Positions 36,188 to 63,659 of a stretch of 64,000 bases of DNA are shown here, in pieces (within the stretch, counting starts at the first letter, position 1; each line of letters starts with the position of its first letter). The notes under the pieces were generated by a model that had not been told where the DNA came from, made no database searches, and saw only the letters and a program-made list of their open reading frames with translations. The stretch lies in the IMG/VR virus record IMGVR_UViG_3300031251_000001, positions 1 to 64,000 of that record; one strand, written 5' to 3'. Position numbers and translations under genes: made by a program.

Positions 36188-36467
36188 GTCATCCTCCCAG
36201 TGGGATTGTTTCCAGTATGACCCACTGGCGGGTTCGGCCGCGATCAGAGGAACGGCCTTCCAGATCCAGCTCGTGTCCTTGAGCGGATCGTGTCGCGTCG
36301 ATGGGCAAGTGTAGCGCAATCAGCTGAGTCGTGTCCAGTCGCATGCCCTGCGTCTGGATGCGACGCCTTCCTGTTCGTTGCAGGAAGAGCACAGAGCTGG
36401 TGGAATCGGTTACCATCGTCACACCCTCGGGAGTCAGATTGTGTCAGCAGCGGTTCTTAATTCGATC

Positions 36468-38351
36468 ATGGCTACTGTGCCCACCACCGCTAACGGTGAA
36501 GTCCCCGCACCCTACGCGGCGGCGGAGCGGGAGGCACGAACCTCTAAACACATTCTAAACCTTCTGAACAACTACCGGGACGATCCCAAGAAGATGGTGT
36601 CGGTCGAACCGCTCCTTCCGTTGATGATCAAGCTGGAAGGCAAGCCGATGACGCTGCGGGATCACTTCCCCTTCGAGCCCTTCTTTCGCACCCGCCTGGC
36701 CGACGTCATCCAGTTCAAGACGGGACGACAGGCTGGCAAGTCGGCATCGTTGTCAGCTCGCACGATCGCGATGACCAACACGATTGACAACTTCTCCACG
36801 CTGGTGGTCACGCCGCTCTTCGAGCAGGCCCGACGACTCTCGACCATGTACTTCCGTCCGATGCTGGAGAACTCGCCGGTGCGGTCGCTGTTTGCTGACA
36901 GCGTCAACGCCTTGAAGAACGTCATGCACCGTATCTTCCGCAACGGAAGCCAGGTGATCTTCTCGTACGCCTACCTGAGTGCGGATCGTAACCGTGGTAT
37001 CTTCGCGGATCAGTTGGTGATCGATGAGCTCCAGGACATGCGACACGAGAACATCTCGGTGCTCATGGAGTGCTTGTCAGCTCGTAAGTGGAAGCTGCGT
37101 ATTGAAACCGGCACACCCAAGAGCATGGCCAATACGGTTCAAAAAGAATGGAACCATTCCAGCCAAGCCGAGTGGGTGATCAAGTGCCGCACCGCCGGCT
37201 GCAACTATTGGAACGTCGCGTCGCTGCATGAGGACTTGCTCGACATGGTCGGCGGCAGGCCACGCGATGACATCGGGCCGGGGAAGCCGGCCACGAGCTG
37301 TGCCAAGTGCGGCAAGATGATTGACCCCCGCTGGGGACACTGGCACCACTTCAACAAGAAGCTGCGCTGGGAACACGCCGGCTACCACGTCCCGCAGATC
37401 CTCCTGCCTATCCACTCCGAGAACAAGAAGGCCTGGGGCATGCTCCTGGCCAAGATGGGCGGAGCATACGGTTACGACTTCAACAAGTTCCTCAACGAAG
37501 TCATGGGCGAGTCGACCGATGACGGCATGCAGGTCATCTCCGAATCGGATCTCAAGCGAGCAGCGTGCCTGCCCTGGAAGAATGTGTTCGAGGAAGCGGT
37601 TAAGCACACAGGCGATTATGCGGTCCGGTACATGTCGGTGGATTGGGGCGGCTATGGCGTGAAGATGACGTCGTTCACTGTCATCACGATCATGGCCCCC
37701 AACGAGCGGGGTGGCATGGACATCCTCTTCTCGCACCGCGTCAATCGCATCAACGATTTCCCGTACGAGGCCAAACTGATCGCTCAGTTCTTCAAGGCGT
37801 TCCGCTGTGCCCTGCTCATCAACGATATGAACACCATCGGTATGGTCCGTGAGTCCATGCTGCGTCAGGTCGGCATGCCGGCGTCTCGCATCCTGGGTTC
37901 GATGAACACCGGCGTCCAGACTCGTGAGATCTGTCACTTCCACCAGCCGACGACCACCTACCCGTACACGTACATGTCACTGCACAAGACACGAAGCCTG
38001 GCCGTCACTTGCGACGCACTGCGGTCGTGCGCCATCCGGACGTTCCAATTCGATTACGAGAGTGAAGAGCGACCAGGCGTGCTCAAGGATTTTGAGGCGT
38101 TGATCGAAGAGCGAATTGAGCGACCTTCGGTGGGTCAGGTCTACACCATCATCCGTGATCCCGACAAGCCGGACGATTTCGCCCACACGGTGAACATGGG
38201 AGCGTGGTACCACTGGCGATCAACCAACCGCATGCCCGATTTGGCGGCGGCTGCTCGACTGACTCTCCCGGCTGATATTCTGAAACACATCGAACCGGAG
38301 TTCACGGACATCGAGTGGGATGAGATCAACGACAGCAGGCACTTCGGTTAA
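36468..38351 (+). CDS. terL: terminase large subunit (GpA-like)
   Basis: KTGRQAGKS Walker A, IDELQD Walker B, GTPK, zinc-binding Cys cluster, nuclease SVDWGG and PDDFAH; frame is open from 36378. Confidence 0.88.
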   Translation: MATVPTTANGEVPAPYAAAEREARTSKHILNLLNNYRDDPKKMVSVEPLLPLMIKLEGKPMTLRDHFPFEPFFRTRLADVIQFKTGRQAGKSASLSARTIAMTNTIDNFSTLVVTPLFEQARRLSTMYFRPMLENSPVRSLFADSVNALKNVMHRIFRNGSQVIFSYAYLSADRNRGIFADQLVIDELQDMRHENISVLMECLSARKWKLRIETGTPKSMANTVQKEWNHSSQAEWVIKCRTAGCNYWNVASLHEDLLDMVGGRPRDDIGPGKPATSCAKCGKMIDPRWGHWHHFNKKLRWEHAGYHVPQILLPIHSENKKAWGMLLAKMGGAYGYDFNKFLNEVMGESTDDGMQVISESDLKRAACLPWKNVFEEAVKHTGDYAVRYMSVDWGGYGVKMTSFTVITIMAPNERGGMDILFSHRVNRINDFPYEAKLIAQFFKAFRCALLINDMNTIGMVRESMLRQVGMPASRILGSMNTGVQTREICHFHQPTTTYPYTYMSLHKTRSLAVTCDALRSCAIRTFQFDYESEERPGVLKDFEALIEERIERPSVGQVYTIIRDPDKPDDFAHTVNMGAWYHWRSTNRMPDLAAAARLTLPADILKHIEPEFTDIEWDEINDSRHFG

Positions 38352-40345: not shown

Positions 40346-41408
40346 CGACAGCAGTCTTGCTCACGACGTGTTCGCTTGCCCGAAGCTCAGGAAGTTCGCC
40401 AACATCAGTGGACCGGCTACCTGGCTCAATTATGCCATGTTCCGGGAACAAGAGAATAACTTCAAAGAGGCAGACAGGCTAGTCATCAAGTCCAACTTCC
40501 TCAAACATGCCGACTTCTGGGGCGTACGAAAGTACCTCCTGATGGTGGATGACAAGGTCAATATCGACCGCCGCGAGCCGATGACCAAAACGGCTTCCGC
40601 TGGTGATTATGCTTTCTCGGTGACAGACGCCGCCGGCATCACGCATCATCGCTGTTACGTAGGCGACGTGCCCAGCCTGCTCAAGTCGGCTGCCTGGTTG
40701 CACACCCACGGCCGGGATCTGGTGTTCGCTGAACGACAGAAGATTGCTCAGTGCATCCTCGACCGGGCCGATCAATACGAGATCTCGTTCGACCCTGACA
40801 TGGAAGAGCACCTGCACAAGACCGCAGGCCTCGGCGTCTCGACGCGAGCCAGCGTCGCCAAGGCCTTGACAGCTCGGGCCGTGCTGTCGGAGGGGATAGC
40901 CAAAGACGCACTCTACAAGTTCGCGGAAGATTGCAAAAACGGGGAGAATGATTTCACCGACAACGCCACCGCCCTCGACGTGGTGAGGAGACTGGACGCT
41001 TTTGATCAGATGCCCGGCTGGAGAAATAAGTACGCCAGCGGCCTTCCCCTTCCCGAGGAGATCCTTGATGTCACCCACCGCAAGGTGGCTGAACTCAAGA
41101 ACCACATCGTGGAGACGGCCACTGGTCGTATCTACTCCAAGGATCAGTTCGCCGGCCTCAACATGGAGCTCCTGGCTGACCATGTCGGACTGGAGTTCGC
41201 CAAGCGGGCCTCGATCGATGAGTCCATCGATCCTGACATGATTTGTGCCATGCTCAAGACGGCTAATCATGACACCGCTCAGGCCTTCGACCGTTTCATG
41301 CAACAACGCGGAGTGAAACCCGTTTCCTCGCCGACGATCCTGGTTCGGCTCGAACCAGAGGCGGGAGCGTGGGGTAAACTCGCCGAGTCTTACTCCCTTT
41401 CCAACTGA
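40230..41408 (+). CDS. putative head-associated protein with recurrent K-x-A motifs
   Basis: 392 aa; KGA, KHA, KTA (x3), KSA, KIA, KFA, KYA, KVA, KRA, KLA; GGAG SD. Confidence 0.55.
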   Translation: MTLVDIASDVSLSMTKQVRDKYGLPGFVKGATDDDLRHTDSSLAHDVFACPKLRKFANISGPATWLNYAMFREQENNFKEADRLVIKSNFLKHADFWGVRKYLLMVDDKVNIDRREPMTKTASAGDYAFSVTDAAGITHHRCYVGDVPSLLKSAAWLHTHGRDLVFAERQKIAQCILDRADQYEISFDPDMEEHLHKTAGLGVSTRASVAKALTARAVLSEGIAKDALYKFAEDCKNGENDFTDNATALDVVRRLDAFDQMPGWRNKYASGLPLPEEILDVTHRKVAELKNHIVETATGRIYSKDQFAGLNMELLADHVGLEFAKRASIDESIDPDMICAMLKTANHDTAQAFDRFMQQRGVKPVSSPTILVRLEPEAGAWGKLAESYSLSN

Positions 41409-42078
41409 CGTCCGTGCGACGAGAGAAACAGTAGCGGCAACGGGAGCAGGTCATCTTGTGTCCTGTCCCTTGCTCAGCCGGACAAACCAGTGAAGCACGA
41501 CCGGGAGTCTCCCAGAACTTGGCGAGGCTCCCTTGCTTTTCCCTGAACACCAACTCGGCCGCATACCCCGGAACATCACGGTCATCGACTGCCAGGTAGG
41601 CTACCCCGGCAAAAGGCAATCCACGCATGGGTGGTTCTCCGGTGTCACGATCGGCGGAGAGCCACAGGTAGACGTTGGGCAGTGCTGCCAGGTCAAAGAG
41701 AGCACCGAGGATGTTGGCTTCCCGCCAGGAGCGGGTGTAGATCAGGAACTTGGTCTGTGGCACGCGCAGGGCGATCTCGATGACCTTGCGGACATAGATC
41801 GCACTGTAGAAGTCACCGGAGACGTGCCACCTGACCATACGGTACCGCTGCAGGCGGATGGTCATCACCACATCATTAACGAACTCAGCCGTATGCGTGC
41901 TGGCTTCGTTTTCGGTCAGGGCCTGCTTGACGCTGGGCATGTGGAAGTAGCCCTGGGCAGCGTAGCAGATTTTATCGCACGTCGGCGAACGACCCGGACA
42001 GGTGGACCGGGCCGGGATCGAGAACGTGGCGATGTCGTTGCCGAGCTTGATATTGCCCGTGCGGAGAAGTGAAGTCAT
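41296..42078 (-). CDS. Gp88-like (radical-SAM-related) phage protein
   Basis: GN.KL....FSIPA..TCPG....C...CYA, RWHVSGDF, YTRS, LWLSAD, CP......TC..C.YC. Confidence 0.75.
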   Translation of the reverse strand: MTSLLRTGNIKLGNDIATFSIPARSTCPGRSPTCDKICYAAQGYFHMPSVKQALTENEASTHTAEFVNDVVMTIRLQRYRMVRWHVSGDFYSAIYVRKVIEIALRVPQTKFLIYTRSWREANILGALFDLAALPNVYLWLSADRDTGEPPMRGLPFAGVAYLAVDDRDVPGYAAELVFREKQGSLAKFWETPGRASLVCPAEQGTGHKMTCSRCRYCFSRRTDVSWKGSKTRRVYPTLPPLVRAEPGSSARKRVSLRVVA

Positions 42079-44178: not shown

Positions 44179-44550
44179 TTAATCATCGTCATCGTCGTCG
44201 AAGTCATCCTCGTCGTCGAGGTCTTCATCATCAATGTCCTCGTCATCGAAGTCATCGTCGAGGTCGTCCTCGTCGTCCTCGTCATCCTCATCGTCGAAGT
44301 CATCTTCTTCGTCGAGGCCCTCGTCCTCGAAGTCCTCGTCGTCGAAATCATCGTCGTCGAGTTCATCGAGATCTTCGTCCTCGTCCTCATCCTCCTCATC
44401 GTCGAGATCTTCGTCCTCGTCTTCATCGTCGGGCACGGTTTTACGACGGCCGGCCTGGATGGGCATCAGGATGGGTCCCCAGCCATCCACTTCGACGAGA
44501 ACGCTGGGTGTTGGTTTGAATAGTGATCTAACGGCTAGAGACAGGAGCAT
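44179..44550 (-). CDS. small protein with ~83-aa Asp/Glu-rich tail
   Basis: GAGG SD upstream, terminator downstream; tail of DEDED/DDDF/DEDL units. Confidence 0.65.
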   Translation of the reverse strand: MLLSLAVRSLFKPTPSVLVEVDGWGPILMPIQAGRRKTVPDDEDEDEDLDDEEDEDEDEDLDELDDDDFDDEDFEDEGLDEEDDFDDEDDEDDEDDLDDDFDDEDIDDEDLDDEDDFDDDDDD

Positions 44551-45283
44551 GTCCTATTCCTCGTTTAAGTGACGCAGCCAGCTTTTGGGTGTTGCCTGTT
44601 TTCATAGGGAGTGACTCCAGCTGGGAAAGGAGTCGATCGATTTCCTGGCGTAAATGATCATCCACTTCGGAGGCCTTGGCGTCATTGCTCTTGGCCATGC
44701 CGAGCGTGATGTCGGGGTCGCCCATATCCTGCACTGACTCTATCAGATCACCGGGGAGAACGAACTCAGTCAGGATGGAGGGCGGGCGGGAGAAGCCCTC
44801 CATTTTGAGTTGGTTCACCACGTAGGCGCGAACGATCTCGGAGGGGAAGGCGGGATCTTCCTCGTGATCGGGCCACAGCAGCGTGGCCTCCGCGACTCCC
44901 CAAGCGCACTCCATGACGTCGGCAGGGTCGAAGTCAGTGAAGTTAGCTTCGCTTCCGGAGAAGGCGTTGCAGCCACGGATGAAGGCGGAGATGTCGTTCC
45001 AGAAGGCATCGCTGGTCACGATGTCGATGGCCGTCATCAGCCGGTCAATGTTGCCGGCGGATGGTTCCACCTTGAAGACGCGTTCCAGCTCGGCACGGAG
45101 CGTGGCGGGTGACCAGGTCAGGCAGTCGAGGGCTTCGTCGGTTTCGCGTTGCGGGCCGAAGCGATCGACCACGATGGCAAGCATGGTGGTACCGAAGGTC
45201 TCGTCATCAACCAGGAGTCGTTCAATGACATCGTTGGCTTGAGGGAGACTACGGACGCCGGAGCCGGTGACTGCTGGTTGCAT
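44528..45283 (-). CDS. hypothetical phage protein (acidic; possibly virion-associated)
   Basis: Start MQPAVTG after an AAGGA SD; FDPAD..ECAWGV.E motif. Confidence 0.65.
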   Translation of the reverse strand: MQPAVTGSGVRSLPQANDVIERLLVDDETFGTTMLAIVVDRFGPQRETDEALDCLTWSPATLRAELERVFKVEPSAGNIDRLMTAIDIVTSDAFWNDISAFIRGCNAFSGSEANFTDFDPADVMECAWGVAEATLLWPDHEEDPAFPSEIVRAYVVNQLKMEGFSRPPSILTEFVLPGDLIESVQDMGDPDITLGMAKSNDAKASEVDDHLRQEIDRLLSQLESLPMKTGNTQKLAASLKRGIGHAPVSSR

Positions 45284-45305
45284 GGTTCCATCCTTGGGAC
45301 TGACT

Positions 45306-46172
45306 CTATCGTAGCTTAGGGAGCTCGTAGTTTGCCCAGAACGTCTCCAGCTTCTCTTCCTTCTCCCGTTTCTTGGAGGAGGCGTTAGGCCGGCCGATGC
45401 TGATGGACTTCCATTTGTAGAGCTTCTTGGCTTGCTGGTACTCAGGGCAGTCATAGCCACTGAGCAGGAACTTGGCGTGTTTAAGATTACCCAAAGCCTT
45501 GAGCATTTCAACGTGCTCAGGACCATTCATTTCCACGCGATAGACGTCGGGACTGACGCGAGTGTCGGGGAAGTAGGGCGGATCGATGTAGAACCACACA
45601 CCAGGCTTGTCCATCGACTTGATCAGTTTGGTGACGTGGAGTTTTCGGATCATCACGTGTCGTAATCGCACCGAAGCCTGGGGCAAACCCTCCACGGCGC
45701 CAAAGAGTGCCGAGGCCTGCTCCAGCATGCCGTTACGGAGGCGACAGAAGGAAGCTGGGGCAAAGCTGTCACCGCGACCGCTCATGGAGAGACGCATCGC
45801 CAGGAAGTAGTGGTAGGCAGCTGCGGTCTTATCGAGGATTTCGAGTCGGTTCGATTCAACGGTATTGTGCGAAGCTCTCCATTGTTCCTCGCTGAAGGGG
45901 GTAGCACGGAGCATCCGGATTAACTTGTCGGAGAGCTTGGGGTTAGCCAGCACCTCATAGAAGTTGGTGATCCAGCCGTCGAGATCGTTGATGATCTCGC
46001 CAACCTTGCCGTTGTCCTCGATCCAGTCCCAACCCTCGGCCCAGCCACCGACACAAGCGAAGACGCGGATGCGGTGTGGGGCGGCAAGTTGCTTGATGAT
46101 GTTCTTCAGATAGAACTTACCACCATGCACTTTCAGAGGTTTAGCTTGTTTTGGAGTTCGCAAGGGTTTCAT
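45306..46172 (-). CDS. DNA adenine methyltransferase (Dam/D12 class)
   Basis: PLK.HGGK, INDLD...NFY, FYIDPPY catalytic motif IV, LSGYD. Confidence 0.88.
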   Translation of the reverse strand: MKPLRTPKQAKPLKVHGGKFYLKNIIKQLAAPHRIRVFACVGGWAEGWDWIEDNGKVGEIINDLDGWITNFYEVLANPKLSDKLIRMLRATPFSEEQWRASHNTVESNRLEILDKTAAAYHYFLAMRLSMSGRGDSFAPASFCRLRNGMLEQASALFGAVEGLPQASVRLRHVMIRKLHVTKLIKSMDKPGVWFYIDPPYFPDTRVSPDVYRVEMNGPEHVEMLKALGNLKHAKFLLSGYDCPEYQQAKKLYKWKSISIGRPNASSKKREKEEKLETFWANYELPKLR

Positions 46173-47726: not shown

Positions 47727-48128
47727 TCACGAGGTTAGGTTATAGGTTTCCATGCTGGTCAGACTGCTCAGCCGGGCCGTGGCGGCTAGTAATTGCTCTA
47801 CACGTGCGCGAATTTCATCCAGACCGTACTCGTAGTCGGCTGACGAGCGGAAGTCGAGAATGACTTCGTTGGAGCGAAAGAAGGGGAACTCATTGTCGAC
47901 GTTGGGGTCGTCGACAGGGTACTCCGCCATGTCAGCGACGGAGGCAACATTAGTGAACTTATTCACCTGATCTTCACTTCCCAGGGCCAGGGGCTGGCGG
48001 ATGAAGACGAAGATGTTGGGGTCGATACCTACCGGATTGGCTGTCACCAGGCGGAGCCGGAACACATCCAGATCCGCAGAGTCAACACGTGTCAGCCCGT
48101 ACCGCTGGAGATCGATCGTGACTGACAT
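47727..48128 (-). CDS. hypothetical protein, probably structural
   Basis: 133 aa; IFVF ... F..VAS.AD..EYP ... PFFR motif. Confidence 0.6.
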   Translation of the reverse strand: MSVTIDLQRYGLTRVDSADLDVFRLRLVTANPVGIDPNIFVFIRQPLALGSEDQVNKFTNVASVADMAEYPVDDPNVDNEFPFFRSNEVILDFRSSADYEYGLDEIRARVEQLLAATARLSSLTSMETYNLTS

Positions 48129-48137
48129 AGTAATCCC

Positions 48138-48416
48138 TTACTCTGGTTCCAGGTCCGGAATATCGGCCGGCATTCCTTTGCCGGTGCCATCGCGGGAGAT
48201 GACTCCCTTAATTTGTATTCTACCTCCTGATGGATGAATCATCATAGTCTTGGGATCAAACTTGATGGCCTCCTTCGTCCTGGCGTCGACGATCTTGATC
48301 GTGCAGTTCACTGTCTGCACGTTAGGCCCGAGAGGGCTCTCGGCATTATCGAGGTTGGTTTGCGCGATCGCAGTGAACTGGCGTAGTACGGGCTTCTCAG
48401 ACGTATTCAATGACAT
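48138..48416 (-). CDS. hypothetical protein
   Basis: 92-aa ORF overlapping the glycosyltransferase stop. Confidence 0.55.
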   Translation of the reverse strand: MSLNTSEKPVLRQFTAIAQTNLDNAESPLGPNVQTVNCTIKIVDARTKEAIKFDPKTMMIHPSGGRIQIKGVISRDGTGKGMPADIPDLEPE

Positions 48417-50520
48417 CGGTCACGGTTCCCTTCTTAGCTAGAGCGACGATAGCCTTCTGGACAAAGGCATCATAGGGGTGCTTCCAGTGTGGGTTAAGGT
48501 GATAGGTTCCAGTGGGCAGCGCAGCGGTGCCGGCCTCTACGTACTTGGCGTTCAAGTCGGCTGACGAGGAGGCGTGGTAGGCGCTAACGCCCCAGCGGTA
48601 AATGTATTGCCAGGCAGACGGCTCCAGGGCGGGTCGCAACACCGGGAGACCCAGACGGGCGACCTTCTCCATGAAGATCTTATCGTAGTCCCCCGTGGTT
48701 GGCTCAATGAGCCGGTGCTCGACTGCCACACTCCGCTTGAAGACCGATGTCATCAGGCCGTATCCGAAGTTCTTGGGATCAACAATCCCCTCGTAGGTTG
48801 TCTCGCCCTTCACACCGACTGGCCAGAACCAGTAGCGCTGTGAGTTGTACATGAAGCAGGTGGGGTCTTTCTGAAGGGCACTCATGGCCTGGTCCAGTCG
48901 ACCGGGGAGGCTGATATCATCGTCGTCCCAGACAGCCACGTATTCCTCAGCCATCGACATGCCGATGGCGAACTTCTCTCCCAGGGAGAGGCAGCGTTTG
49001 GGCAGGTTAATGATCTGGACGTTATGGGCTCCGCATTTCAGCTCCGAGCCGCGAGCATCGTTGATGATGATCAGTTCCTTGTGTGGCCACGATTGCAGCA
49101 GGAACGACTGAATCGACTCTTCCAGGAGTCGCTGATACTTGGTGCCGGCCCGCCCGAAGGTCATGCAGATGGCGGTGACCTTGGGTGGGATCTGGGGAGC
49201 AGCGGAGAGGGCCACGGGGTGAGCGGAGAGCTTGGCCAAGGGTTTCTTCTCCGGAGGTTTAGGAGGAGGTGGGGGCAGAGTCTGCGTCTCGGTATAGGTG
49301 GTGGTCGAGGTTTGAGTGTCACACTCGGTGCTGGTCTCAGCAGAGGCCGTGGCTACTATGGCCGCTGGTATGTGCTGCACCATGTGATCGATTGCTTCTT
49401 TGCTGATTGATGCAAGGAACTGAGCATCATTTTCTACATCTACCGATTTCCTGAAGTTGAGATCTGCGCTCTCGCGAAGATCAGGGATTCCAAAATACGT
49501 ATTTTGCGGCGGGTGAATCACCGGCAGGATGCTGTTGTGCTGATCGTAGCCGTCGACGTTGGCGAAGTTGATGAACTTCTTGTCCTGGCGAACGATGATC
49601 TCTTTCTTCTGCACCGCCGAGTACATGACCAGATCGTTGCCTTCGTCGGGCTTGGGCAGGTCGGGGTAGACCTTGCGAGCAGCAGCAAGCGCCTCTTCAA
49701 TGTCGTCCTCGCTTTGCCCTTTATGGTCACGGAAATGGATGAGCACGTCATCCCATCGAAGGCCGAGCTCCACGCGGCCAATGATGTAGTTAGCCATCAT
49801 CCGCCAGGCCGGTGACTCAAAACCTTTACCGCGAATATGGGTGAAGCGGTGTTGCCATTTCAGACCCTTGATGCAGACACAGCGACCGCCACGCTGTCGT
49901 ACTTTGGCGTGGGTGTAGACTTCTTCACCGCCGAAGTTCCGGAAGTTGTCGTTGAAACCGACCCAGTCTTTGGTACGCATGCCGAACAGGCCCATGCCGT
50001 GGGCCGGAATCTCCAGCCACTTATCCTCCTGGAAGGTCGTGTGCCAGGTCCCCAGCATGACGTCAGTGCCCCACTGCGGCTCCATGTGGGTAGCCAGCAC
50101 CTGTTCGGTGTCGTCGTAGCAGAGCGGGCCGTGCAGCAGATCCTTGTTATCCGGGAAGGTCTCGATGTACTCGTGGATCGCCTCGCAGGCCCCAGGGTGC
50201 AGGATGACGTGGGAGTCCACGCACAGGGTGTAGTCTGAGGCTGATTCCTGAAAGACCAGGTTACGGGGCCTGGCTGTGCCATCTTGCTTGGAATGGATGT
50301 AGCGGACGTTCATGCCGGGCGTGTCCCGCATCATCTTGTTGCAGAGTTCAAAGTTGAGTTGGGCTTCGGCGGGTCGCTTGGTGTTGTCGATCACCAGGAG
50401 CTGGTCCACCCACTTCTTCTGGAATAATCGTGTCGTAGTGAGCGTAGCCCAGAGGCCGTCGTAATCTGTGTGGACAGCCATGCCCACCGTGAGCGTATTC
50501 TTCCGCATTGTCGACTCCAT
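48397..50520 (-). CDS. two-domain GT-A glycosyltransferase: polypeptide GalNAc-transferase-like domain plus GT2 domain
   Basis: Domain 1: ARPRN, CVDSHV (DxH), P.HGMGLFGM, GF...F..FGGEE.....KV...GG...C......WQH.F. Domain 2: KVTAIC.T, Q.....ELIIIND, WDDDD.S.P.RL. Thr/Pro-rich linker between them. Confidence 0.85.
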   Translation of the reverse strand: MESTMRKNTLTVGMAVHTDYDGLWATLTTTRLFQKKWVDQLLVIDNTKRPAEAQLNFELCNKMMRDTPGMNVRYIHSKQDGTARPRNLVFQESASDYTLCVDSHVILHPGACEAIHEYIETFPDNKDLLHGPLCYDDTEQVLATHMEPQWGTDVMLGTWHTTFQEDKWLEIPAHGMGLFGMRTKDWVGFNDNFRNFGGEEVYTHAKVRQRGGRCVCIKGLKWQHRFTHIRGKGFESPAWRMMANYIIGRVELGLRWDDVLIHFRDHKGQSEDDIEEALAAARKVYPDLPKPDEGNDLVMYSAVQKKEIIVRQDKKFINFANVDGYDQHNSILPVIHPPQNTYFGIPDLRESADLNFRKSVDVENDAQFLASISKEAIDHMVQHIPAAIVATASAETSTECDTQTSTTTYTETQTLPPPPPKPPEKKPLAKLSAHPVALSAAPQIPPKVTAICMTFGRAGTKYQRLLEESIQSFLLQSWPHKELIIINDARGSELKCGAHNVQIINLPKRCLSLGEKFAIGMSMAEEYVAVWDDDDISLPGRLDQAMSALQKDPTCFMYNSQRYWFWPVGVKGETTYEGIVDPKNFGYGLMTSVFKRSVAVEHRLIEPTTGDYDKIFMEKVARLGLPVLRPALEPSAWQYIYRWGVSAYHASSSADLNAKYVEAGTAALPTGTYHLNPHWKHPYDAFVQKAIVALAKKGTVTDVIEYV
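49491..49506. promoter_or_regulatory. 16-bp palindrome CAAAATACGTATTTTG, copy 8 (intragenic)
   Basis: Exact; encodes QNTYF in the glycosyltransferase interdomain linker. Confidence 0.7.
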
Positions 50521-50568
50521 CCGTGTGTCGGCTGTAGTCTACAGGAGCTGGTGGGGGTGTCAATTGAA

Positions 50569-52401
50569 CTAGGCGCCACCAGTTGACGATGCGAACGTGA
50601 ACGCCGTCGAAGAGTGGAAGGTGACGGTGGTGGTTGAGGTGGTTGTGGTGGTAGTGGTGGTCGTGGAGGTGGTGGTAGTTTCCGTGATGGTGGTGGTTGT
50701 CGTGGTGAAGGTGGCGGTAACCGTAGTGGATCCGGTGTCTGTGCTTGTCGTGGTCGTGGTGGTCGTGGTGGTCGTGACATCACCGGTGGCGGTGGTGGTC
50801 GTATCGGTGCTGGTGTCCGTGGTGGTCGTGGTAGTGGTGTCGGTCGAGGTGTCGCTAAAGGTGGTGTCGGTACCCGTATCGGTGCTGGTGTCCGAGGTGC
50901 TGCTGGTATCGGTGTAAGAGGTGGTTGTCAGGGTGGCGGTGGTGGTCGTGTCGGTGCTGGTATCTCCTGTCGTGGTCGTGGTGGTCGTGGTGGTCGTTGA
51001 GGAGGTCGAGAAGGTATCGGAGAACGTGTAAGTATGGGTCGTGGAAGTCGAGGAGGTGGTTCCCGTGCCGGTACTGGTCGTGGTGGTCGTCGTGGTGGTT
51101 GTGGTCGTGGTATCGCTGCCGACCGTCTGACCGCAAGCGGAGGAGACGCCGGCCCATTCCAGCCACATGCCCAGCCAGCCGCTCGGCGTGGAGGGAGGAA
51201 TCGGCAGGGAGAGGATGTCGAACTCAATGGTGTTGGCACCCGAGACAAACGGTCCAGTGATGTTGTAGAGCCGTGGTGGGCCGCCCAGCATGAACAGGTT
51301 AGCGTCATAAGGCCCGATGTCGGTCAGGCCGGCCACCCCCACCGAGGTGCCGTTGATGCGGACAGCGGTGCAGTAGTTGTCACAGATGAAACGGAACTCC
51401 AGGAGCAAGTCAGCAGGGCTGCTAACTGTTCCTGGGATGGTGAAGTCCAGATGGAAAGTGTAGGTCGTGGAGACGCCCGCTGACACGGTGCCGGCGCAAT
51501 CCTTGGCGATCCAGCGGGCATTGTTACCTGGTAGCATCCACGGCGGTGAGGGGTAGGCCGCCGAATCCATCGACTTAGCCGGTGAACCGGAGATAGTCCA
51601 GTTGGCGTCATTGTTACAGGGATCGCCGAGCACGACGTTGGAGGCGTCGCAGCCGGTATTGTAGAGGCCCAGGTCCACCGGCTTGAGGTAGCACTGGATC
51701 ATGTCGCACTCGACGAACGATGACCGCCACACCTCGGCCTTGACGTCGCCGCTGGGCCACTCAATGTAGGAGACCAGGGCGCTTTGAAGTGCTCCCTCGG
51801 AATTAACGCAGAAGTCAGTGACCACGGGTTGAATCTGCGGATCGACGATGAGATCAGTGAAATCGAAATCAAAGTCAAAGACAGGAGCACAAGGCGTCCC
51901 CGACTTGGTCAGGGTGACAATGTCGGGCTGCACCGAGGTGGCGTTAATCGTGATATCAGCGCAGGGTATCTGAATGGCCCCGATGATGGTGATGACGCAG
52001 TTGCCATCAGCGTCCTGGGCGGTGCCACCGGTCAGGGTGAAGGCCGGTGGGTTAGGTGGTTCGACCTGGGTGATGCTGGTATGCGTCTGGATCGTCGGAC
52101 ACAGCGCCGGCGGGAGCACCAGCTCGCCGCCGATGGTCAGAACGCAACTATTACCGGGGACACGATCAGTAGAGAGTTGCAGGCCGACAGGCTCATCACC
52201 GATGCGGTATCGGACAGGCACGATGCTGTCGATGAAGGTGGGGCAGGGAGCCTCAATGTCCATCGGCACGAGCACGTTATCGAGGCAGTCAGGGATGTCC
52301 AGCGGAGGCGTATCGACATCAGTGTCCGGCAACATGCCACCCGGTGGAATCGGGGTGACAGGCGGATAACCGCACCGGGTTGTGTCGAACACATTACTCA
52401 T
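50569..52401 (-). CDS. tail-module protein with Cys/Pro-rich N-terminus, jelly-roll/lectin-like domain and poly-Thr mucin-like C-terminus
   Basis: WI....... YTF...F.I ... F..DN....V.ING ... F..G.N.IEF galactose-binding-like pattern; last ~180 aa mostly Thr. Confidence 0.7.
   Translation of the reverse strand: MSNVFDTTRCGYPPVTPIPPGGMLPDTDVDTPPLDIPDCLDNVLVPMDIEAPCPTFIDSIVPVRYRIGDEPVGLQLSTDRVPGNSCVLTIGGELVLPPALCPTIQTHTSITQVEPPNPPAFTLTGGTAQDADGNCVITIIGAIQIPCADITINATSVQPDIVTLTKSGTPCAPVFDFDFDFTDLIVDPQIQPVVTDFCVNSEGALQSALVSYIEWPSGDVKAEVWRSSFVECDMIQCYLKPVDLGLYNTGCDASNVVLGDPCNNDANWTISGSPAKSMDSAAYPSPPWMLPGNNARWIAKDCAGTVSAGVSTTYTFHLDFTIPGTVSSPADLLLEFRFICDNYCTAVRINGTSVGVAGLTDIGPYDANLFMLGGPPRLYNITGPFVSGANTIEFDILSLPIPPSTPSGWLGMWLEWAGVSSACGQTVGSDTTTTTTTTTTTTSTGTGTTSSTSTTHTYTFSDTFSTSSTTTTTTTTTTGDTSTDTTTTATLTTTSYTDTSSTSDTSTDTGTDTTFSDTSTDTTTTTTTDTSTDTTTTATGDVTTTTTTTTTTSTDTGSTTVTATFTTTTTTITETTTTSTTTTTTTTTSTTTVTFHSSTAFTFASSTGGA
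50575..51120 (-). repeat. low-complexity ACC/ACG (poly-Thr) coding repeat
   Basis: Runs of up to 12 Thr with recurring DTSTDTTTTAT units. Confidence 0.85.
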
Positions 52402-53324: not shown

Positions 53325-54127
53325 GGTGTGAACCTCTGGCGACCGCCAACAATGGACAAGTCGAGTGACTCGGTGCTGGCGAGGAGGGCCAGCGGCGTGT
53401 CAGAAGCCAGGCTGTTATCGATCGACATGCCAACCATGCCGTATTGATTTGGTGTCACGGTGAAGGAACCGCCGGGGTACTTCACCAGCAGAGATTGCAG
53501 GTACTTAACACCATTGAACTGGCTCTCCGGAGCACACAGGTTTCTCTTAAAGAGCGGATCGCCCGTGACGTTAACCGTGATCGAATAGCTCGACTCGCTG
53601 GTCTGATCTAGCTCTAAGATGACACCGTTCTCTCCGATCAGCCACACTTCGCCGGCTGCCGTATTACCGGCGGTATCGGCAATGGCCCGTACGCCTACCT
53701 GGGGCTGTGGGATAACCGCTGAGGCCACCAGCTCGGTGCCGGCGGGATCAAACTTATGCAGCCCTACCGACCAGGAGCGGAAGGCGTTCAGGCGGATCGG
53801 GTCGCTCAGGATCATTCCTGCCGGCATCCCGAAGAGGTCGACGATAGGAACGACACTCGGAGGCGAGATGACGTCAAAGGTGGCTAGTGCCCTGATTTCC
53901 TCGGAGTCGTCTCCGAAGCGAAGGATCACGGTGTCGGCTGAGATCTCCACCTGAGACAGGTAGGCACCATTGTCGATGCCGATCGGGTAGAGCACCAAGT
54001 CGATGAAGGTGTTGTCGATGAGGACATCGCCTGCAGCGTTCCGCAGTGTGGCCCGTGACGAGAACGGATAGGCGGAGAGGTCTTTTTCTTTCTGGTATTC
54101 CAGATAGCCGGTACGGGTGCTTTGCAT
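53321..54127 (-). CDS. tail/baseplate-associated protein (paralog family)
   Basis: N-terminal EYQKEKDLSAYPF; GEVWLIGENGV, GDPLF...C. Confidence 0.65.
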   Translation of the reverse strand: MQSTRTGYLEYQKEKDLSAYPFSSRATLRNAAGDVLIDNTFIDLVLYPIGIDNGAYLSQVEISADTVILRFGDDSEEIRALATFDVISPPSVVPIVDLFGMPAGMILSDPIRLNAFRSWSVGLHKFDPAGTELVASAVIPQPQVGVRAIADTAGNTAAGEVWLIGENGVILELDQTSESSYSITVNVTGDPLFKRNLCAPESQFNGVKYLQSLLVKYPGGSFTVTPNQYGMVGMSIDNSLASDTPLALLASTESLDLSIVGGRQRFTP

Positions 54128-55710
54128 TAGACGGCCTCATGGTGGAAGTGTGAGAAGACCGTCTGGCTGTTGTAAGCGGCGATGCCGTCGATGCCGTCCG
54201 AGGGTCGATAGTAGAGCAGGTTGAAGGAGCTCAAATCCCAGGAACCGCCTTCGTCGAGGTTGGTGGCGTTGGCATTAAGCCTAACGCCCAGGTTGCCCTC
54301 ATCCACTGTCGTCACAGAGACTGAATACCAGTCTCCCATCGTGACGACCATTTCGGTCTGGGCGATGGTGACCAGCGTGAAGCCGTTGTAGTATCGGATG
54401 AGCAGGTTCTGTGTCGGGTAATCGATCAAGATCAGGAAATAACGGGGAGTACCACCCGAGAAGCGGTAGTTGATCATGAGCCCGCCGTTACGCTGGGCAC
54501 CGATGTCGCCTGGTACCAGCTTCAAATGGCAGAGTGTGTAGCGGTCGACCGTCTTCATGTCCGTGCCGACCCAACCGGCCAGATTGGTGTCGAAGATGTC
54601 CTCAGCCTGGAGAGCTTGACCCAGATCACTGAAAGCAGTGCAATAGCCATCGGCGTTCGGGTCGCTGCCGAAAGCAGAGGTAAAGCTGAAGCTCCCTTCG
54701 ATGGCGGCAAAGTTGGGAGCAGTGCCGGCACGGAAGCACACCTCAAAAGGCAGCGTAATCGTACCAGGGGTAGTGCCGTCCGGAGGCTGGGTACTCCCTG
54801 TCGTGGTGGTCGTGGTGCCGGTGATGATGACCGGTTGGTACTCGTTGGGTAGCTTGCCGTCCGAGTCGGCGATCTGCGGAGCGGAACAGACGGCCTGCCG
54901 TGGCATGGAGCAGTTGAGGACAAAGCCGTGACCATCGGTGTAGCGGGTGACTGAGGCGCAGCCCTGGAAGTCCAGGATGATCTGCCCAGCACAGCTAGGC
55001 TGCACCTGGGAAATGCTCTCGATGGGTTGCGGGTCAGGACAGGTATTACTCTCAGGACGGGTGTCGCACGGCCCCAGGTAGGTTTGGATGATCGGCGTCG
55101 TAGCGGTACTGAACTCGTCACCTTGACCGTCTGAGAGACTCATGACGATGCAGTTGCGTGGCTTGCCATTGATGGTGCGAACTTCCTTGGCGATCGTGAA
55201 GGGAGCCTGGCCAACCAAATTGACGATGCCGGTTAGGGCGTCTCCCGCCTGATCACCCTTCATGGACGACACCGGGAGAGCCTCATAGCTGGAAGCAGCC
55301 CTGCGCGACAGGATCGACTGAGATGGCGTGCTGAAGCGGTGTGAAACCAGGGCATCGTCGATGACCACGGGACCGAAGACAATCCAACCACCCACCCCTT
55401 TGACGAGAGGGGTGAGTCGAACCATCATGCGGTCGCTCTTCTTGACGAGAGTGGCGGCAGCAACGGGAACGCCAGGCGTTGAGGGATCACTGCAAGCGTT
55501 GATCATCACCGTGCACATGCCGGGGCCGCTGGTCAGTGCCGAGAAGTAAAGATCGCTACCCAGGCTATCAGGGAACTTGATCTTAGCGTCGATAATGATG
55601 CCGGATTGCAGCACTTGTCCGGCGTCGTCCACGCGCGTCGCCAGATCGCTCAACGGGTAGCCGTTGTCGGTGGTCTGGTCGTACCAATGTTCGTGGGATG
55701 TAGTGGGCAT
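54127..55710 (-). CDS. tail/baseplate-associated protein (paralog family) with short poly-Thr linker and C-terminal beta-sandwich
   Basis: WYDQTTDNGYPL; GPC..RPES.TC; ITGTTTTTTGST linker. Confidence 0.65.
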   Translation of the reverse strand: MPTTSHEHWYDQTTDNGYPLSDLATRVDDAGQVLQSGIIIDAKIKFPDSLGSDLYFSALTSGPGMCTVMINACSDPSTPGVPVAAATLVKKSDRMMVRLTPLVKGVGGWIVFGPVVIDDALVSHRFSTPSQSILSRRAASSYEALPVSSMKGDQAGDALTGIVNLVGQAPFTIAKEVRTINGKPRNCIVMSLSDGQGDEFSTATTPIIQTYLGPCDTRPESNTCPDPQPIESISQVQPSCAGQIILDFQGCASVTRYTDGHGFVLNCSMPRQAVCSAPQIADSDGKLPNEYQPVIITGTTTTTTGSTQPPDGTTPGTITLPFEVCFRAGTAPNFAAIEGSFSFTSAFGSDPNADGYCTAFSDLGQALQAEDIFDTNLAGWVGTDMKTVDRYTLCHLKLVPGDIGAQRNGGLMINYRFSGGTPRYFLILIDYPTQNLLIRYYNGFTLVTIAQTEMVVTMGDWYSVSVTTVDEGNLGVRLNANATNLDEGGSWDLSSFNLLYYRPSDGIDGIAAYNSQTVFSHFHHEAV

Positions 55711-62006: not shown

Positions 62007-63659
62007 CTATCTCGATACGGGGATGCTGTTGGTGGCGGTGATGGAGATGTCGTCAATCGACGAGAAGAACTGCACGGTACGGTAGCTGATGCCCTGCAGC
62101 GGCAAGTAGGGAATGTCGATCAACGTCGCCGAGTCAAACAGGAGGGTGTTGTCCTGGTTATCGACTAACCGTCCTCGTGCTGAGGCTCGTGCCACTTTAC
62201 CGTTCGTGCCGATCACCGAATAGACCGCGTTGATGATGTCGCTGACGTAGAGCTTCCCGATGAAGTTAGTCCGGTTGATTACACGGGCCACAGCGTCCTG
62301 GATGGCTCCGTTGTCAAAGAGCGGATCGGTGTCCTGACGGGTGAGCGAGAGATCGACGCTGACCCAGCAGGGGAAGGGAGCCCGCACCAGGCAGTCCGCC
62401 CCAGGATGGTCCACCAGCTTGTTGGAAGCATAGCCATCCTGAATAGCGGCGATCCGGCTGATGGCGGAGAGCACGACGTTGTAGGACGCTGTGGCTCCAA
62501 TCGCCAAGGCTGTGACATCGGTCGCAGTATCAATGAAGTCGATTGTCGCGGTCTGGTAACGGCTATAGCGGCCATCCACCGGGTTACTGACGTCGGGATC
62601 ATCGACGCCAATGTTGACGCCCCGTGAGAGGCTCTGCACTGCGAAGGAGCCGCCCAGGGTCGAGCCGACCGGCAGAATGGAGGCGACCTCGTAGAAGCCG
62701 GGCATATCGTCTTTGGTGATGAGGATACGCCAGACACTTTTAGGGGTGCCGTCGCTGGTGGTCAGCTTCTCGGAGAGAACAGCGGTTTTGGTGATCTGTG
62801 TTTTGAGGGCTACCTCATCCGTTCGCACATACCAATCGACTCGCCCACCAACTCCCACAGGGATCAGGAAACGACGATCACGTCGCATCTCGGCGTCGCC
62901 GGCGCCAATGATGGAATCACAGACGAAATCGGATAGGGTGGTGTCGCCACGCAGCAGGGCACGCATGGCAGGGCGGGAAGCGAAGGAGGGACGGGCTACT
63001 CCAGCTTCCAGCTTGTCAATGAGATCTTCGTTGGTCTCGGAATCAATGCCATTGCGGAAATCGCTGGCGGCGTAAGACGAGGTGAAGCCGGTGGGGACCA
63101 CATTCGGCGTGACGATGGCTCCGGCACGAAGCATGCCGACGCTGCCCGTCTGCGAGCAAACAATGGTGATCGTGAACTCGTAGCTGTCGTTGTCAATTTT
63201 GGTGATCAGCCGATCAGTCGGGGTGGCGATATCACCGGGGTCATTGCGTGCCGAGAAGACGGTGGTCGTAGTGAACTGCAGCGGTCCTGAGAAGAAGATG
63301 CTGCCGACGGGTACGACCAAGGGAGTATCGTTATCGCGGATGATCTTGATCTCACCTTCGGCCGCGACAGCGGGGAGACGGTCGATGCCGAAATTGGCCA
63401 CGATGTCGGTGACCATATCGGGGTCGGCCGCAGCGGGGTCATTCTTGATCAGGGTCAAGCTGCGGTTAGCCAGGACTTCGTTGTAGAGCGTGGTGGTCTG
63501 GGCTGTCAGCAGGGCGTGGATACGCGAGAGCACGTCATACACCGCGCCACGGGAGCTGTCGATCTGCGGATCAAACTCCACGATCTGCCGTACCGTGGAG
63601 TCAGCGAGGTTGGTCACCAGATCAGGTGCCAGCGTCTCAAGAGTGGGAGCTGTGATCAT
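62007..63659 (-). CDS. baseplate J-like protein
   Basis: NFG.DR..A..A.G, VP.G..F, G.D.ETNE.L, G.GD.EM.RD, GG.VD.YV. Confidence 0.8.
   Translation of the reverse strand: MITAPTLETLAPDLVTNLADSTVRQIVEFDPQIDSSRGAVYDVLSRIHALLTAQTTTLYNEVLANRSLTLIKNDPAAADPDMVTDIVANFGIDRLPAVAAEGEIKIIRDNDTPLVVPVGSIFFSGPLQFTTTTVFSARNDPGDIATPTDRLITKIDNDSYEFTITIVCSQTGSVGMLRAGAIVTPNVVPTGFTSSYAASDFRNGIDSETNEDLIDKLEAGVARPSFASRPAMRALLRGDTTLSDFVCDSIIGAGDAEMRRDRRFLIPVGVGGRVDWYVRTDEVALKTQITKTAVLSEKLTTSDGTPKSVWRILITKDDMPGFYEVASILPVGSTLGGSFAVQSLSRGVNIGVDDPDVSNPVDGRYSRYQTATIDFIDTATDVTALAIGATASYNVVLSAISRIAAIQDGYASNKLVDHPGADCLVRAPFPCWVSVDLSLTRQDTDPLFDNGAIQDAVARVINRTNFIGKLYVSDIINAVYSVIGTNGKVARASARGRLVDNQDNTLLFDSATLIDIPYLPLQGISYRTVQFFSSIDDISITATNSIPVSR

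Follow-up and report, generated by a model that had tools for sequence, protein, structure and literature searches.

It has been reported that some mycobacteriophages glycosylate their own capsid and tail-tube proteins in the cytoplasm with glycosyltransferases (GTs) that they encode themselves (Che8 gp110, Corndog gp38, Myrna; Freeman et al. 2023 as summarised in PMC12363180). Phage virion glycosylation has so far been shown experimentally only in a few mycobacteriophages, where it alters antibody recognition. In animals and some protists, mucin-type O-glycosylation is initiated by the polypeptide GalNAc-transferases (ppGalNAc-Ts, family GT27), whose GT-A catalytic domain carries a DxH motif, a Gal/GalNAc-T motif (WGGEN/Q) and a downstream conserved His, and whose natural acceptors are S/T-rich tracts. 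In Gram-positive bacteria, the serine-rich-repeat adhesin (SRRP) loci (GtfA/B, dGT1, accessory Sec) encode a low-complexity S/T-rich acceptor next to cytoplasmic GTs, some of them bifunctional two-domain enzymes, and the acceptor is glycosylated before export or assembly. In addition, two other groups of GT-A enzymes are relevant: the prophage/host wall-teichoic-acid GT2 enzymes TarP and TarS, and the phage enzymes that glycosylate 5hmC in DNA, which are abundant in IMG/VR and whose top PDB homolog is TarP (bioRxiv 10.1101/2023.12.21.572611). Literature searches for phage mucin-like proteins, threonine-rich fibres or prokaryotic GT27 found no description of the module considered below.

The locus lies in a window of 64,000 nucleotides (positions 1 to 64,000 of IMG/VR record IMGVR_UViG_3300031251_000001) from an uncultured jumbo, myovirus-like phage, in which a tail-fibre-like protein ending in a poly-Thr tail is followed directly by a soluble GT with two GT-A domains. 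The preliminary description had observed this pair, with a gap of 48 bp, and the observation is confirmed. The features are as follows:

62007..63659, minus strand: baseplate J-like wedge protein, marking the start of the tail module (Pfam Baseplate_J E = 7e-13; PHROG 6).
54127..55710, minus strand: upstream fibre/baseplate-module protein (527 aa) with a short TGTTTTTTGST linker, a possible minor acceptor.
50569..52401, minus strand: fibre-like structural protein, 610 aa, the last large gene of the baseplate/fibre module.
51112..51720, minus strand: beta-sandwich domain of the fibre protein (residues 228-430).
50572..51111, minus strand: poly-Thr tail (residues 431-610), the proposed O-glycan acceptor.
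48397..50520, minus strand: soluble two-domain GT, 707 aa from the first ATG (probable start at M5, position 50508, giving 703 aa).
49651..50493, minus strand: domain 1 (residues 10-290), GT27-like GT-A domain and proposed protein-directed (initiating) transferase.
50209..50217, minus strand: DSH (D102-S103-H104), the DxH motif, putative Mn2+ ligands.
49921..49935, minus strand: FGGEE (residues 196-200), aligned to WGGEN/Q of the GT27 Gal/GalNAc-T motif.
49849..49857, minus strand: W222-Q223-H224, whose His aligns with that of the GT27 '(S)RVGH' segment, the putative third metal ligand by analogy with GT27.
49216..49650, minus strand: inter-domain region (residues 291-435), ending in an S/T- and Pro-rich linker, without a Pfam match.
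48400..49215, minus strand: domain 2 (residues 436-707), classical GT2 with WDDDDISLP (D532-D535 at 48916-48927), the proposed elongating transferase.
47727..48128, minus strand: conserved small gene of 133 aa downstream of the GT block.

The fibre-like gene was correctly described as the last of the tail-protein run, since a collinear block of large ORFs runs from the baseplate J gene down to 50569 and matches, gene for gene, a related 220-kb phage contig (L004), in which the 527-aa protein also has a homolog of 552 aa. The fibre protein itself has no Pfam or PHROG family, and the same searches on eight neighbouring tail ORFs gave nothing. Its place on the virion is inferred from gene order only, and its nature as a fibre from gene order and from an alignment of homologs with a conserved N-terminal part of about 420 aa and variable distal domains; there is no direct homology to a characterised fibre. 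The beta-sandwich domain is shared with small bacterial PEP-CTERM surface proteins: a HMMER search of 1.84 billion representatives found 113 hits, most of them proteins of about 200-230 aa matching residues ~244-420, and 23 of 45 aligned members carry a Pfam PEP-CTERM motif. The AF2 model of this domain has a pLDDT of 85, and Foldseek against the PDB gave only weak matches of the CBM/galactose-binding-like fold class (E ≥ 2e-3, TM ≤ 0.36).

Residues 431-610 are 62% Thr, 14% Ser and 7% Asp. This is the only S/T tract (at least 70% S/T per 20-aa window) among 65 non-overlapping ORFs (20,325 aa) of the window, and the only other run is the T6 of the ORF at 54127-55710, that is to say, such runs occur here only in fibre-module proteins. 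It could be supposed that the tail is an out-of-frame low-complexity repeat, a mis-assembly or the remnant of a gene decaying after loss of its distal domain, because the region is an imperfect short-period DNA repeat with strong GC skew and the window copy alone lacks the C-terminal domain that every homolog has. However, this reading is very unlikely: the ORF runs uninterrupted from a conserved domain into the tract, homologs switch to poly-T/S at the same conserved boundary, EW(T/A)GV..C, Thr codon usage (ACC 64%, ACG 23%) is similar to that of the rest of the gene, and alternative frames give shorter ORFs. In the homologs, the S/T tract is a linker of 25-95 aa before a variable distal domain, whereas here it is expanded and terminal; therefore the protein is not the dedicated acceptor that had been proposed, but a member of a fibre-like family.

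The gap between the fibre gene and the first ATG of the GT is 48 nt, while the second ATG (M5) is preceded by a GGAG Shine-Dalgarno sequence and agrees with the database gene call of 703 aa, which gives a gap of 60 nt. Pfam GT2 (PF00535) matches both halves above the gathering threshold of 23.3 bits (whole protein 57.5; domain 1 alone 29.2, E = 1e-6; domain 2 alone 31.9). No membrane segment is present (maximum Kyte-Doolittle 19-residue mean 0.97), which fits direct cytoplasmic protein glycosylation. The motifs listed for domain 1 in the preliminary description are all there, namely CVDSHVIL (D102, H104), PAHGMGLF, FGGEE, KVRQRGG and WQH, as is WDDDDISLP in domain 2, and D102, H104, G197, G198, E199, E200, W222 and H224 are invariant across 42 homologs.

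The grouping of domain 1 with GT27 and the synteny of the gene pair in related phages had been set beforehand as tests, and both came out in favour of the proposal. The AF2 model of domain 1 has a GT-A fold (pLDDT 91.3), and all of the top 50 Foldseek matches in the PDB are ppGalNAc-Ts (E 8e-16 to 1e-12, TMq 0.58-0.71), a result that gives no measure of the margin over non-GT27 GT-A folds. A profile of the C-terminal half matches only GalNAc-T7 (E = 0.02) and GalNAc-T10 (E = 0.49) among PDB glycosyltransferases: GLF is aligned, FGGEE is paired with WGGEN of GalNAc-T7 and WGGEQ of GalNAc-T10, KVRQxGG with K(I/V)WxCGG, and WxH with VGH. The sequence similarity is nevertheless marginal, with about 15% identity in the structural alignments, and neither phmmer nor the full-domain profile finds any GT27 at E ≤ 10; phmmer of the whole GT against PDB sequences gave only PglI at E = 1, and Pfam assigns only the generic PF00535. 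The enzyme also differs from ppGalNAc-Ts in having neither a ricin-type lectin domain (by Pfam) nor a type II membrane anchor or secretory location, and in being fused to a second GT2 domain. Moreover, E200 replaces the Asn/Gln of WGGEN/Q and occupies the position of the acidic residue in the WGGED-type motif of inverting GT7 enzymes; therefore retaining, GT27-like chemistry is not implied.

By sequence profile, the N-terminal half of domain 1 looks like generic bacterial GT2, and through it the full-domain profile finds wall-teichoic-acid and lipid-linked-oligosaccharide enzymes: TarP, the best hit (1.5e-6), TarS and PglI. Domain 2 matches SpsA and heparosan synthase, weakly EpsE and TuaG in NCBIfam, and GalT1 (5hea) only at E = 0.15. 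These matches would suit an enzyme modifying a host envelope glycan (O-antigen, teichoic-acid-like polymer, EPS or capsule) during infection, so as to block superinfection or prevent progeny from re-adsorbing to lysed cells, a role which a jumbo-phage review assigns to phage GT clusters (PMC7824862). However, this explanation seems unlikely, since the GT has no membrane segment, no sugar-nucleotide, flippase or polymerase genes were found nearby in the part of the window that was scanned, the gene sits inside the fibre module with conserved adjacency, the S/T-tract association described below would remain unexplained, and the whole-domain fold and the C-terminal-half profile point to GT27 and not to TarP. 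In contrast to TarP/TarS and the DNA enzymes, domain 1 has DxH instead of DxD/DDD and no trimerisation domain.

Glycosylation of phage DNA is very unlikely as well. In its favour are the TarP match, shared with the 5hmC-glycosylating enzymes, and the DDD-type motif of domain 2. But those enzymes carry R..DDD..EDY/F motifs and cluster with 5mYOX, C5-MT or ThyS genes, none of which is among the annotated neighbours in the part of the window that was scanned; the neighbours here are fibre genes and small unknown ORFs, and the nearest DNA enzyme is an N6-adenine methyltransferase 2.2 kb away. As for the SRRP loci, no GtfA/B (GT4), accessory Sec (SecA2/Y2, Asp) or LPXTG adhesin was found by Pfam among the ORFs scanned in the module and its flanks, and the proposed initiating enzyme is of a different fold class (GT-A here, GT-B in GtfA). 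With respect to the mycobacteriophage GTs, tblastn of the whole GT and of domain 1 against 50,697 deposited phage records found no match (for domain 1, even at E ≤ 1), and thus no detectable sequence relation to Che8 gp110 or Corndog gp38; the candidate target here is a long poly-Thr tract instead of capsid and tail-tube subunits.

Five related jumbo-phage lineages keep the order fibre gene then GT, usually followed by a GT9, which the present phage lacks. The fibre homolog sits immediately upstream of the GT in the contigs L002, L003, L004/L005 and L168, and 1.2 kb upstream in L166, and fibre paralogs carry S/T tracts in every one of these lineages, although in L004 the gene adjacent to the GT has no tract and the tract lies in a gene 6.4 kb upstream. 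Domain 2 is fused to GT9 in L166, and domains 1 and 2 are separate genes elsewhere; these fusions link the three GT modules to one pathway. GTs of about 280 aa with domain 1 alone sit next to mucin-like ORFs, which points to domain 1 as the protein-directed step, and cellular homologs fuse domain 1 to PqqD-like peptide-recognition domains and TPR arrays, as well as to GT25, FucT_N and CmcI glycan-tailoring modules.

The arrangement is not unique, for the enzyme family has at least 560 viral and 434 bacterial loci. In dereplicated viral clusters, an S/T-tract ORF occurs at gene position -1 (just upstream of the GT) in 5/33 against 8/327 at other positions (p = 0.0036), and upstream in 12/183 against downstream in 1/177. 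In bacteria the counts are 7/66 against 2/675 (p = 1e-6), the neighbours being Tat-signal, Cys-rich proteins with poly-T tails, but six of the seven positive loci are Chloroflexota, so these counts are not fully independent. The S/T neighbours fall into about 18 BLAST-unrelated families, so the pairing arose repeatedly; Pfam and PHROG searches on ten of those from other phages gave nothing beyond one PHROG of unknown function and Stig1-like Cys-rich repeats. On the other hand, about 85% of the clusters have no S/T-tract gene at position -1, and there is no general shift in S/T content there (Mann-Whitney p = 0.18), only the tail of the distribution being enriched. That is to say, the condition named in advance as refuting, homologs without any S/T-rich neighbour, holds for most of the family, and the link is a subset association, not a rule.

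The same counts leave room for a protein GT that acts on something other than the poly-Thr tract, such as capsid or tail-tube proteins (as in the mycobacteriophages) or host proteins, the Thr-rich segment being then a bare flexible spacer near the GT only because both lie at the end of the structural module; the tract-free neighbour in L004 would agree with this. This is considered unlikely, because the enrichment is specific to position -1 in viruses and in bacteria and extends over about 18 unrelated families, because in bacteria there is no structural module that could account for the adjacency, and because domain 1 resembles enzymes that naturally act on S/T-rich tracts.

The best explanation, held with moderate confidence, is that the pair is a phage-encoded protein O-glycosylation module. 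In this view, the cytoplasmic GT would transfer, through its GT27-like domain with a DxH...H metal site and an FGGEE motif, a sugar from a nucleotide sugar directly onto Thr/Ser hydroxyls of poly-Thr tracts in the phage's own fibre-like proteins before virion assembly; the fused GT2 domain would add a second sugar, and the GT9 of relatives could add a third. The product would be a densely glycosylated, extended, protease-resistant 'bottle-brush' segment on a baseplate-distal fibre, here about 180 aa long and terminal, so that it would replace the usual distal domain. The analysis itself establishes the anatomy of the genes, the conserved motifs, the structural and profile similarity to GT27, the absence of membrane segments, the conserved synteny and the family-wide enrichment, whereas the transfer activity, the tract as acceptor, the initiating domain and the order of action, the sugar and its anomeric configuration, and the presence of the protein and of any glycan on the virion are inferred from association and similarity, without biochemical or proteomic evidence. 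The interpretation in the preliminary description, in which domain 1 primes Thr with HexNAc and domain 2 extends it to give a mucin-like brush on the virion, is therefore only partly supported.

What is already known is that phages can glycosylate their own virion proteins; what differs here is a separate and far more widespread enzyme family, without a member detected in the 50,697 deposited phage records, whose catalytic domain most resembles the animal mucin-initiating transferases and which is repeatedly encoded next to poly-Thr/Ser proteins. If the module is confirmed, many environmental phages would be seen to carry mucin-like glycoprotein fibres, which bears on adhesion to polysaccharide matrices, stability and host recognition; a soluble, bacterially expressible enzyme for dense Thr O-glycosylation would become available for glycoengineering; and the origin of GT27-type O-glycosylation would become experimentally testable. 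It may further be speculated, tentatively and as less likely than not, that enzymes of the domain 1 type are a large prokaryotic and viral sister group of GT27, carrying out direct cytoplasmic 'mucin-type' O-glycosylation of poly-Ser/Thr tracts on phage fibres, on small 'phage mucins' and on Tat-exported bacterial surface proteins. Dense mucin-like glycoproteins would then be a common but unseen feature of environmental phage particles, and the eukaryotic mucin-initiating enzymes might have a prokaryotic or viral root.

In the flanking DNA, a promoter/terminator scan around the pair found no more sites than in shuffled sequence, and a TTGACA-16-TAGACT match in the intergenic gap carries no weight. 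Downstream of the GT block, the small gene of unknown function at 47727..48128 is conserved, since tblastn with the 139-aa gene that follows GT9 in L002 matches it with E = 3.5e-14.

The window is from a phage, as it contains a large terminase gene and a gene for a baseplate J-like wedge protein, the latter being followed on the minus strand by a run of large ORFs without family annotation. The database copy of the GT sits on a 214-kb contig, and the terminase is at most 30% identical to any deposited phage; therefore, this is an uncultured phage of jumbo size. The main features are as follows:
36378-38351 (+), large terminase
62007-63659 (-), baseplate J-like wedge protein
50569-52401 (-), last large ORF of the run, encoding 610 aa, with a Thr-rich C-terminal part
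48397-50520 (-), next ORF, encoding the 707-aa GT

Residues 431-610 of the 610-aa protein are 62% Thr and 14% Ser. Among 65 non-overlapping ORFs (20,325 aa) in the window, no other protein has such a tract, and only a T6 run occurs in another protein of the module. That the tract is merely an artefact is considered very unlikely. In the GT, the second ATG (M5) is preceded by a GGAG Shine-Dalgarno sequence and matches the database gene call of 703 aa, so the gap between the two genes is 48 or 60 nt. Pfam GT2 matches both halves of the protein, all the motifs listed in the preliminary description are present, and there is no hydrophobic segment, that is to say, the enzyme is soluble. The observation made in the preliminary description, a two-domain glycosyltransferase directly behind a poly-Thr protein, is thereby confirmed.

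About 130 database homologs share residues ~10-265 of domain 1 at about 40% identity with very diverse fusion partners, and about 20 of them share the full domain 1 + domain 2 architecture. In an alignment of 42 sequences, D102, H104, G197, G198, E199, E200, W222 and H224 are invariant. When a full-domain sequence profile was searched against PDB sequences, only generic bacterial GT2 enzymes were found, through the N-terminal nucleotide-binding half (TarP at 1.5e-6, TarS and PglI), and no GT27 appeared at E <= 10. This TarP-like half, together with the literature on jumbo-phage GT clusters, supports the alternative that a host envelope glycan is modified, but that alternative is opposed by the solubility of the enzyme, by its context and by the S/T association described below, and it seems unlikely.

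Three results point to GT27 instead. First of all, the AF2 model (pLDDT 91.3, pTM 0.90) was compared with the PDB by Foldseek, and the top 50 entries are all GT27 polypeptide GalNAc-transferases (T1, T2, T4, T7, T10, T12, Toxoplasma T3 and Drosophila PGANT9A), with E-values from 8e-16 to 1e-12 and TMq from 0.58 to 0.71, nearly the whole domain being aligned. Moreover, a profile restricted to the C-terminal half (46 viral and bacterial sequences) hits only two glycosyltransferases in the entire PDB, GalNAc-T7 (E = 0.02) and GalNAc-T10 (E = 0.49). In addition, this alignment pairs exactly the motifs named in the preliminary description: GLF with GGLF, FGGEE with WGGEN/Q, KVRQxGG with K(I/V)WxCGG, and WxH with VGH. 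The E-values are marginal on their own, but two independent methods converge, and it is concluded that domain 1 is a distant GT27-like GT-A domain. However, it is not a GT27 member in the family sense, since identity is about 15% and there is neither a lectin domain nor a membrane anchor. The acidic E200 lies where inverting GT7 enzymes have the acid of WGGED, so retaining chemistry should not be assumed.

Domain 2 (residues ~436-707) is an ordinary GT2 with WDDDDISLP, and its closest matches are SpsA, heparosan synthase, EpsE and TuaG. The inter-domain linker of the GT is itself rich in S/T and Pro and could also be a glycosylation site:
49216-49350 (-), linker, GT residues ~390-435, containing …TSTECDTQTSTTTYTETQTLPPPPPKPP…

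The Thr-rich protein belongs to a small family found only in related large phages. All members share a conserved N-terminal part of ~420 aa ending in EW(T/A)GV..C, which is followed by an S/T-rich linker of 25-95 aa and then by a variable distal domain, and two paralogs per genome are common. The copy in the window is the exception, as its tract is about 180 aa long and nothing follows it. One domain of this protein was modelled as a confident beta-sandwich (pLDDT 85):
51112-51720 (-), predicted beta-sandwich domain, residues ~228-430
This domain is shared with a large set of ~220-aa bacterial PEP-CTERM-anchored surface proteins (among them proteins P0129-P0234 of the search results), has no Pfam family, and resembles CBM / galactose-binding-like folds only weakly. 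It hints that the phage fibre borrowed a surface-protein domain of host type, and that the host has an exosortase system. The name 'tail fibre' is therefore inferred from gene order and modular architecture, not from homology to a characterised fibre.

In the related phage contigs L002 (223 kb), L003, L004/L005 (220 kb) and L168, the fibre homolog is immediately followed by the double GT2 and then by a GT9-like gene. In another relative, L166 (10487-14395), domain 1 is a separate and apparently split gene (ORFs of 176 aa and 226 aa), while domain 2 is fused to a GT9 domain in one 905-aa protein, and this fusion links the three GT modules. The window has no GT9, but the small gene after its GT is the homolog of the gene that follows GT9 elsewhere:
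47727-48128 (-), small gene downstream of the GT
Poly-Thr tracts occur in fibre-module proteins in all six lineages, although in L004 the tract is not in the gene adjacent to the GT.

Domain 1 is abundant in IMG/VR, with at least 560 confirmed loci, and occurs in 434 loci among bacteria sampled at one genome per species, spanning Alphaproteobacteria, Chloroflexota, Planctomycetota, Arenicellales, Streptomyces and Acidobacteriota, whereas it is absent from 50,697 deposited phage genomes even at E <= 1. In order to test the pairing family-wide, we called ORFs ourselves and used a strict tract definition, namely at least 25 aa in which every 20-aa window is at least 70% S/T. In 33 dereplicated viral clusters, an S/T-tract ORF was found at position -1 in 5/33, against 8/327 at other positions from -6 to +6 (Fisher p = 0.0036), and tract ORFs lie upstream in 12/183 cases and downstream in 1/177. 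In 80 bacterial loci, the corresponding counts are 7/66 and 2/675 (Fisher p = 1e-6). Nevertheless, about 85% of clusters show nothing at position -1, there is no general shift in S/T content (p = 0.18), the bacterial positives are phylogenetically clustered, and the gene calling was crude. Another protein target, with the tract serving as a bare spacer, is thus an alternative to be kept in mind, although it is considered unlikely.

The S/T neighbours fall into about 18 BLAST-unrelated families. Those of viral loci include strongly mucin-like ORFs, for example at loci L035 (45% Thr) and L041 (54% Thr), and GTs with domain 1 alone are sufficient partners in many phages. Many S/T-rich ORFs directly upstream of such single-domain GT homologs end in a shared C-terminal motif, C-x-[KRS]-L-[NGKS]-[FY] (for example CNRLGF, CKKLNF, CKSLNF and CNKLGY), even though the proteins are otherwise BLAST-unrelated, and it may be a virion-attachment or recognition signal. 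These ORFs, in other phage loci, are:
L038, 9453-9980
L047, 9583-9990
L049, 407-1030
L053, 9131-9994
L054, 2806-3576
L060, 1044-1385
L068, 358-993
L071, 978-3422
L081, 64-2163

In bacteria, the gene just upstream of the GT homolog encodes, at seven loci, a small protein with a twin-arginine (Tat-like) signal, a Cys-rich module and a poly-Thr/Ser tract:
L104, 4783-5991, Chloroflexota
L107, 7410-7865, Chloroflexota
L108, 2414-3169, Chloroflexota
L119, 7109-7624, Chloroflexota
L131, 7317-7895, Chloroflexota
L138, 6729-7646, Chloroflexota
L100, 6426-7028, Gammaproteobacteria
In L107 and L131 these proteins sit next to the same domain 1 + domain 2 fusion. Because Tat substrates fold in the cytoplasm, a soluble GT could modify them before export. 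Furthermore, giant phage proteins (1,090-1,612 aa) with several S/T tracts of 100-200 aa and Stig1-like Cys-rich repeats lie about 1.8 kb upstream of a 595-aa GT homolog, and their Cys-rich modules are BLAST-related to the Chloroflexota poly-Thr proteins L108 and L119:
L016, 4940-8212
L022, 3378-8216
L025, 4489-8211
Cellular homologs also fuse domain 1 to PqqD-like peptide-recognition domains and to TPR arrays.

It is proposed, with moderate confidence, that the soluble enzyme glycosylates poly-Thr tracts of fibre proteins in the cytoplasm, in which domain 1 would act as the protein-directed initiating transferase, domain 2 would add a second sugar, and GT9 in relatives would add a third. The result would be a stiff, protease-resistant, glycan-dense segment on a distal fibre, and in this phage the brush itself may form the fibre tip. 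The gene order, the conserved motifs, the similarity to GT27 and the enrichment of tract genes at position -1 rest on the analysis itself, while the glycosylation of the tract, the division of labour between the domains and the presence of the protein on the virion are inferred. The interpretation in the preliminary description is supported only in part.

Phage virion O-glycosylation is already known in mycobacteriophages, but those enzymes are unrelated at the sequence level, and their targets are capsid and tail-tube proteins. What differs here is a GT27-like family paired with poly-Thr proteins, which no retrieved paper describes for phages or bacteria, although this is only absence of evidence, as the literature covered was incomplete. 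The family is large, uncharacterised and easy to test in E. coli, and it bears on the origin of mucin-type glycosylation.

Glycosylation of DNA by the GT is very unlikely, since the motifs for it are absent and the neighbouring genes required for it are absent from the part of the window that was scanned. The only DNA-modification gene seen near the GT is a D12-class N6-adenine DNA methyltransferase (PHROG 56, E = 1e-29), which overlaps the next ORF by about 220 nt, so that the start of the downstream ORF is probably mis-set. In the same region there is a Pfam GP88 / DUF7227 family protein (E = 1.5e-31) of unknown function, lying between the terminase region and the GT block, and an ORF whose C-terminal ~85 residues are almost entirely Asp/Glu. 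Hyper-acidic proteins of this kind in phages are often DNA mimics or scaffolding-like proteins, but an overlapping plus-strand ORF reads as poly-Ser, so the true frame is uncertain:
45306-46172 (-) and 44528-45526 (-), D12-class methyltransferase and the overlapping next ORF
41296-42078 (-), GP88 / DUF7227 family protein
44179-44550 (-), 123-aa ORF with the acidic C-terminal part
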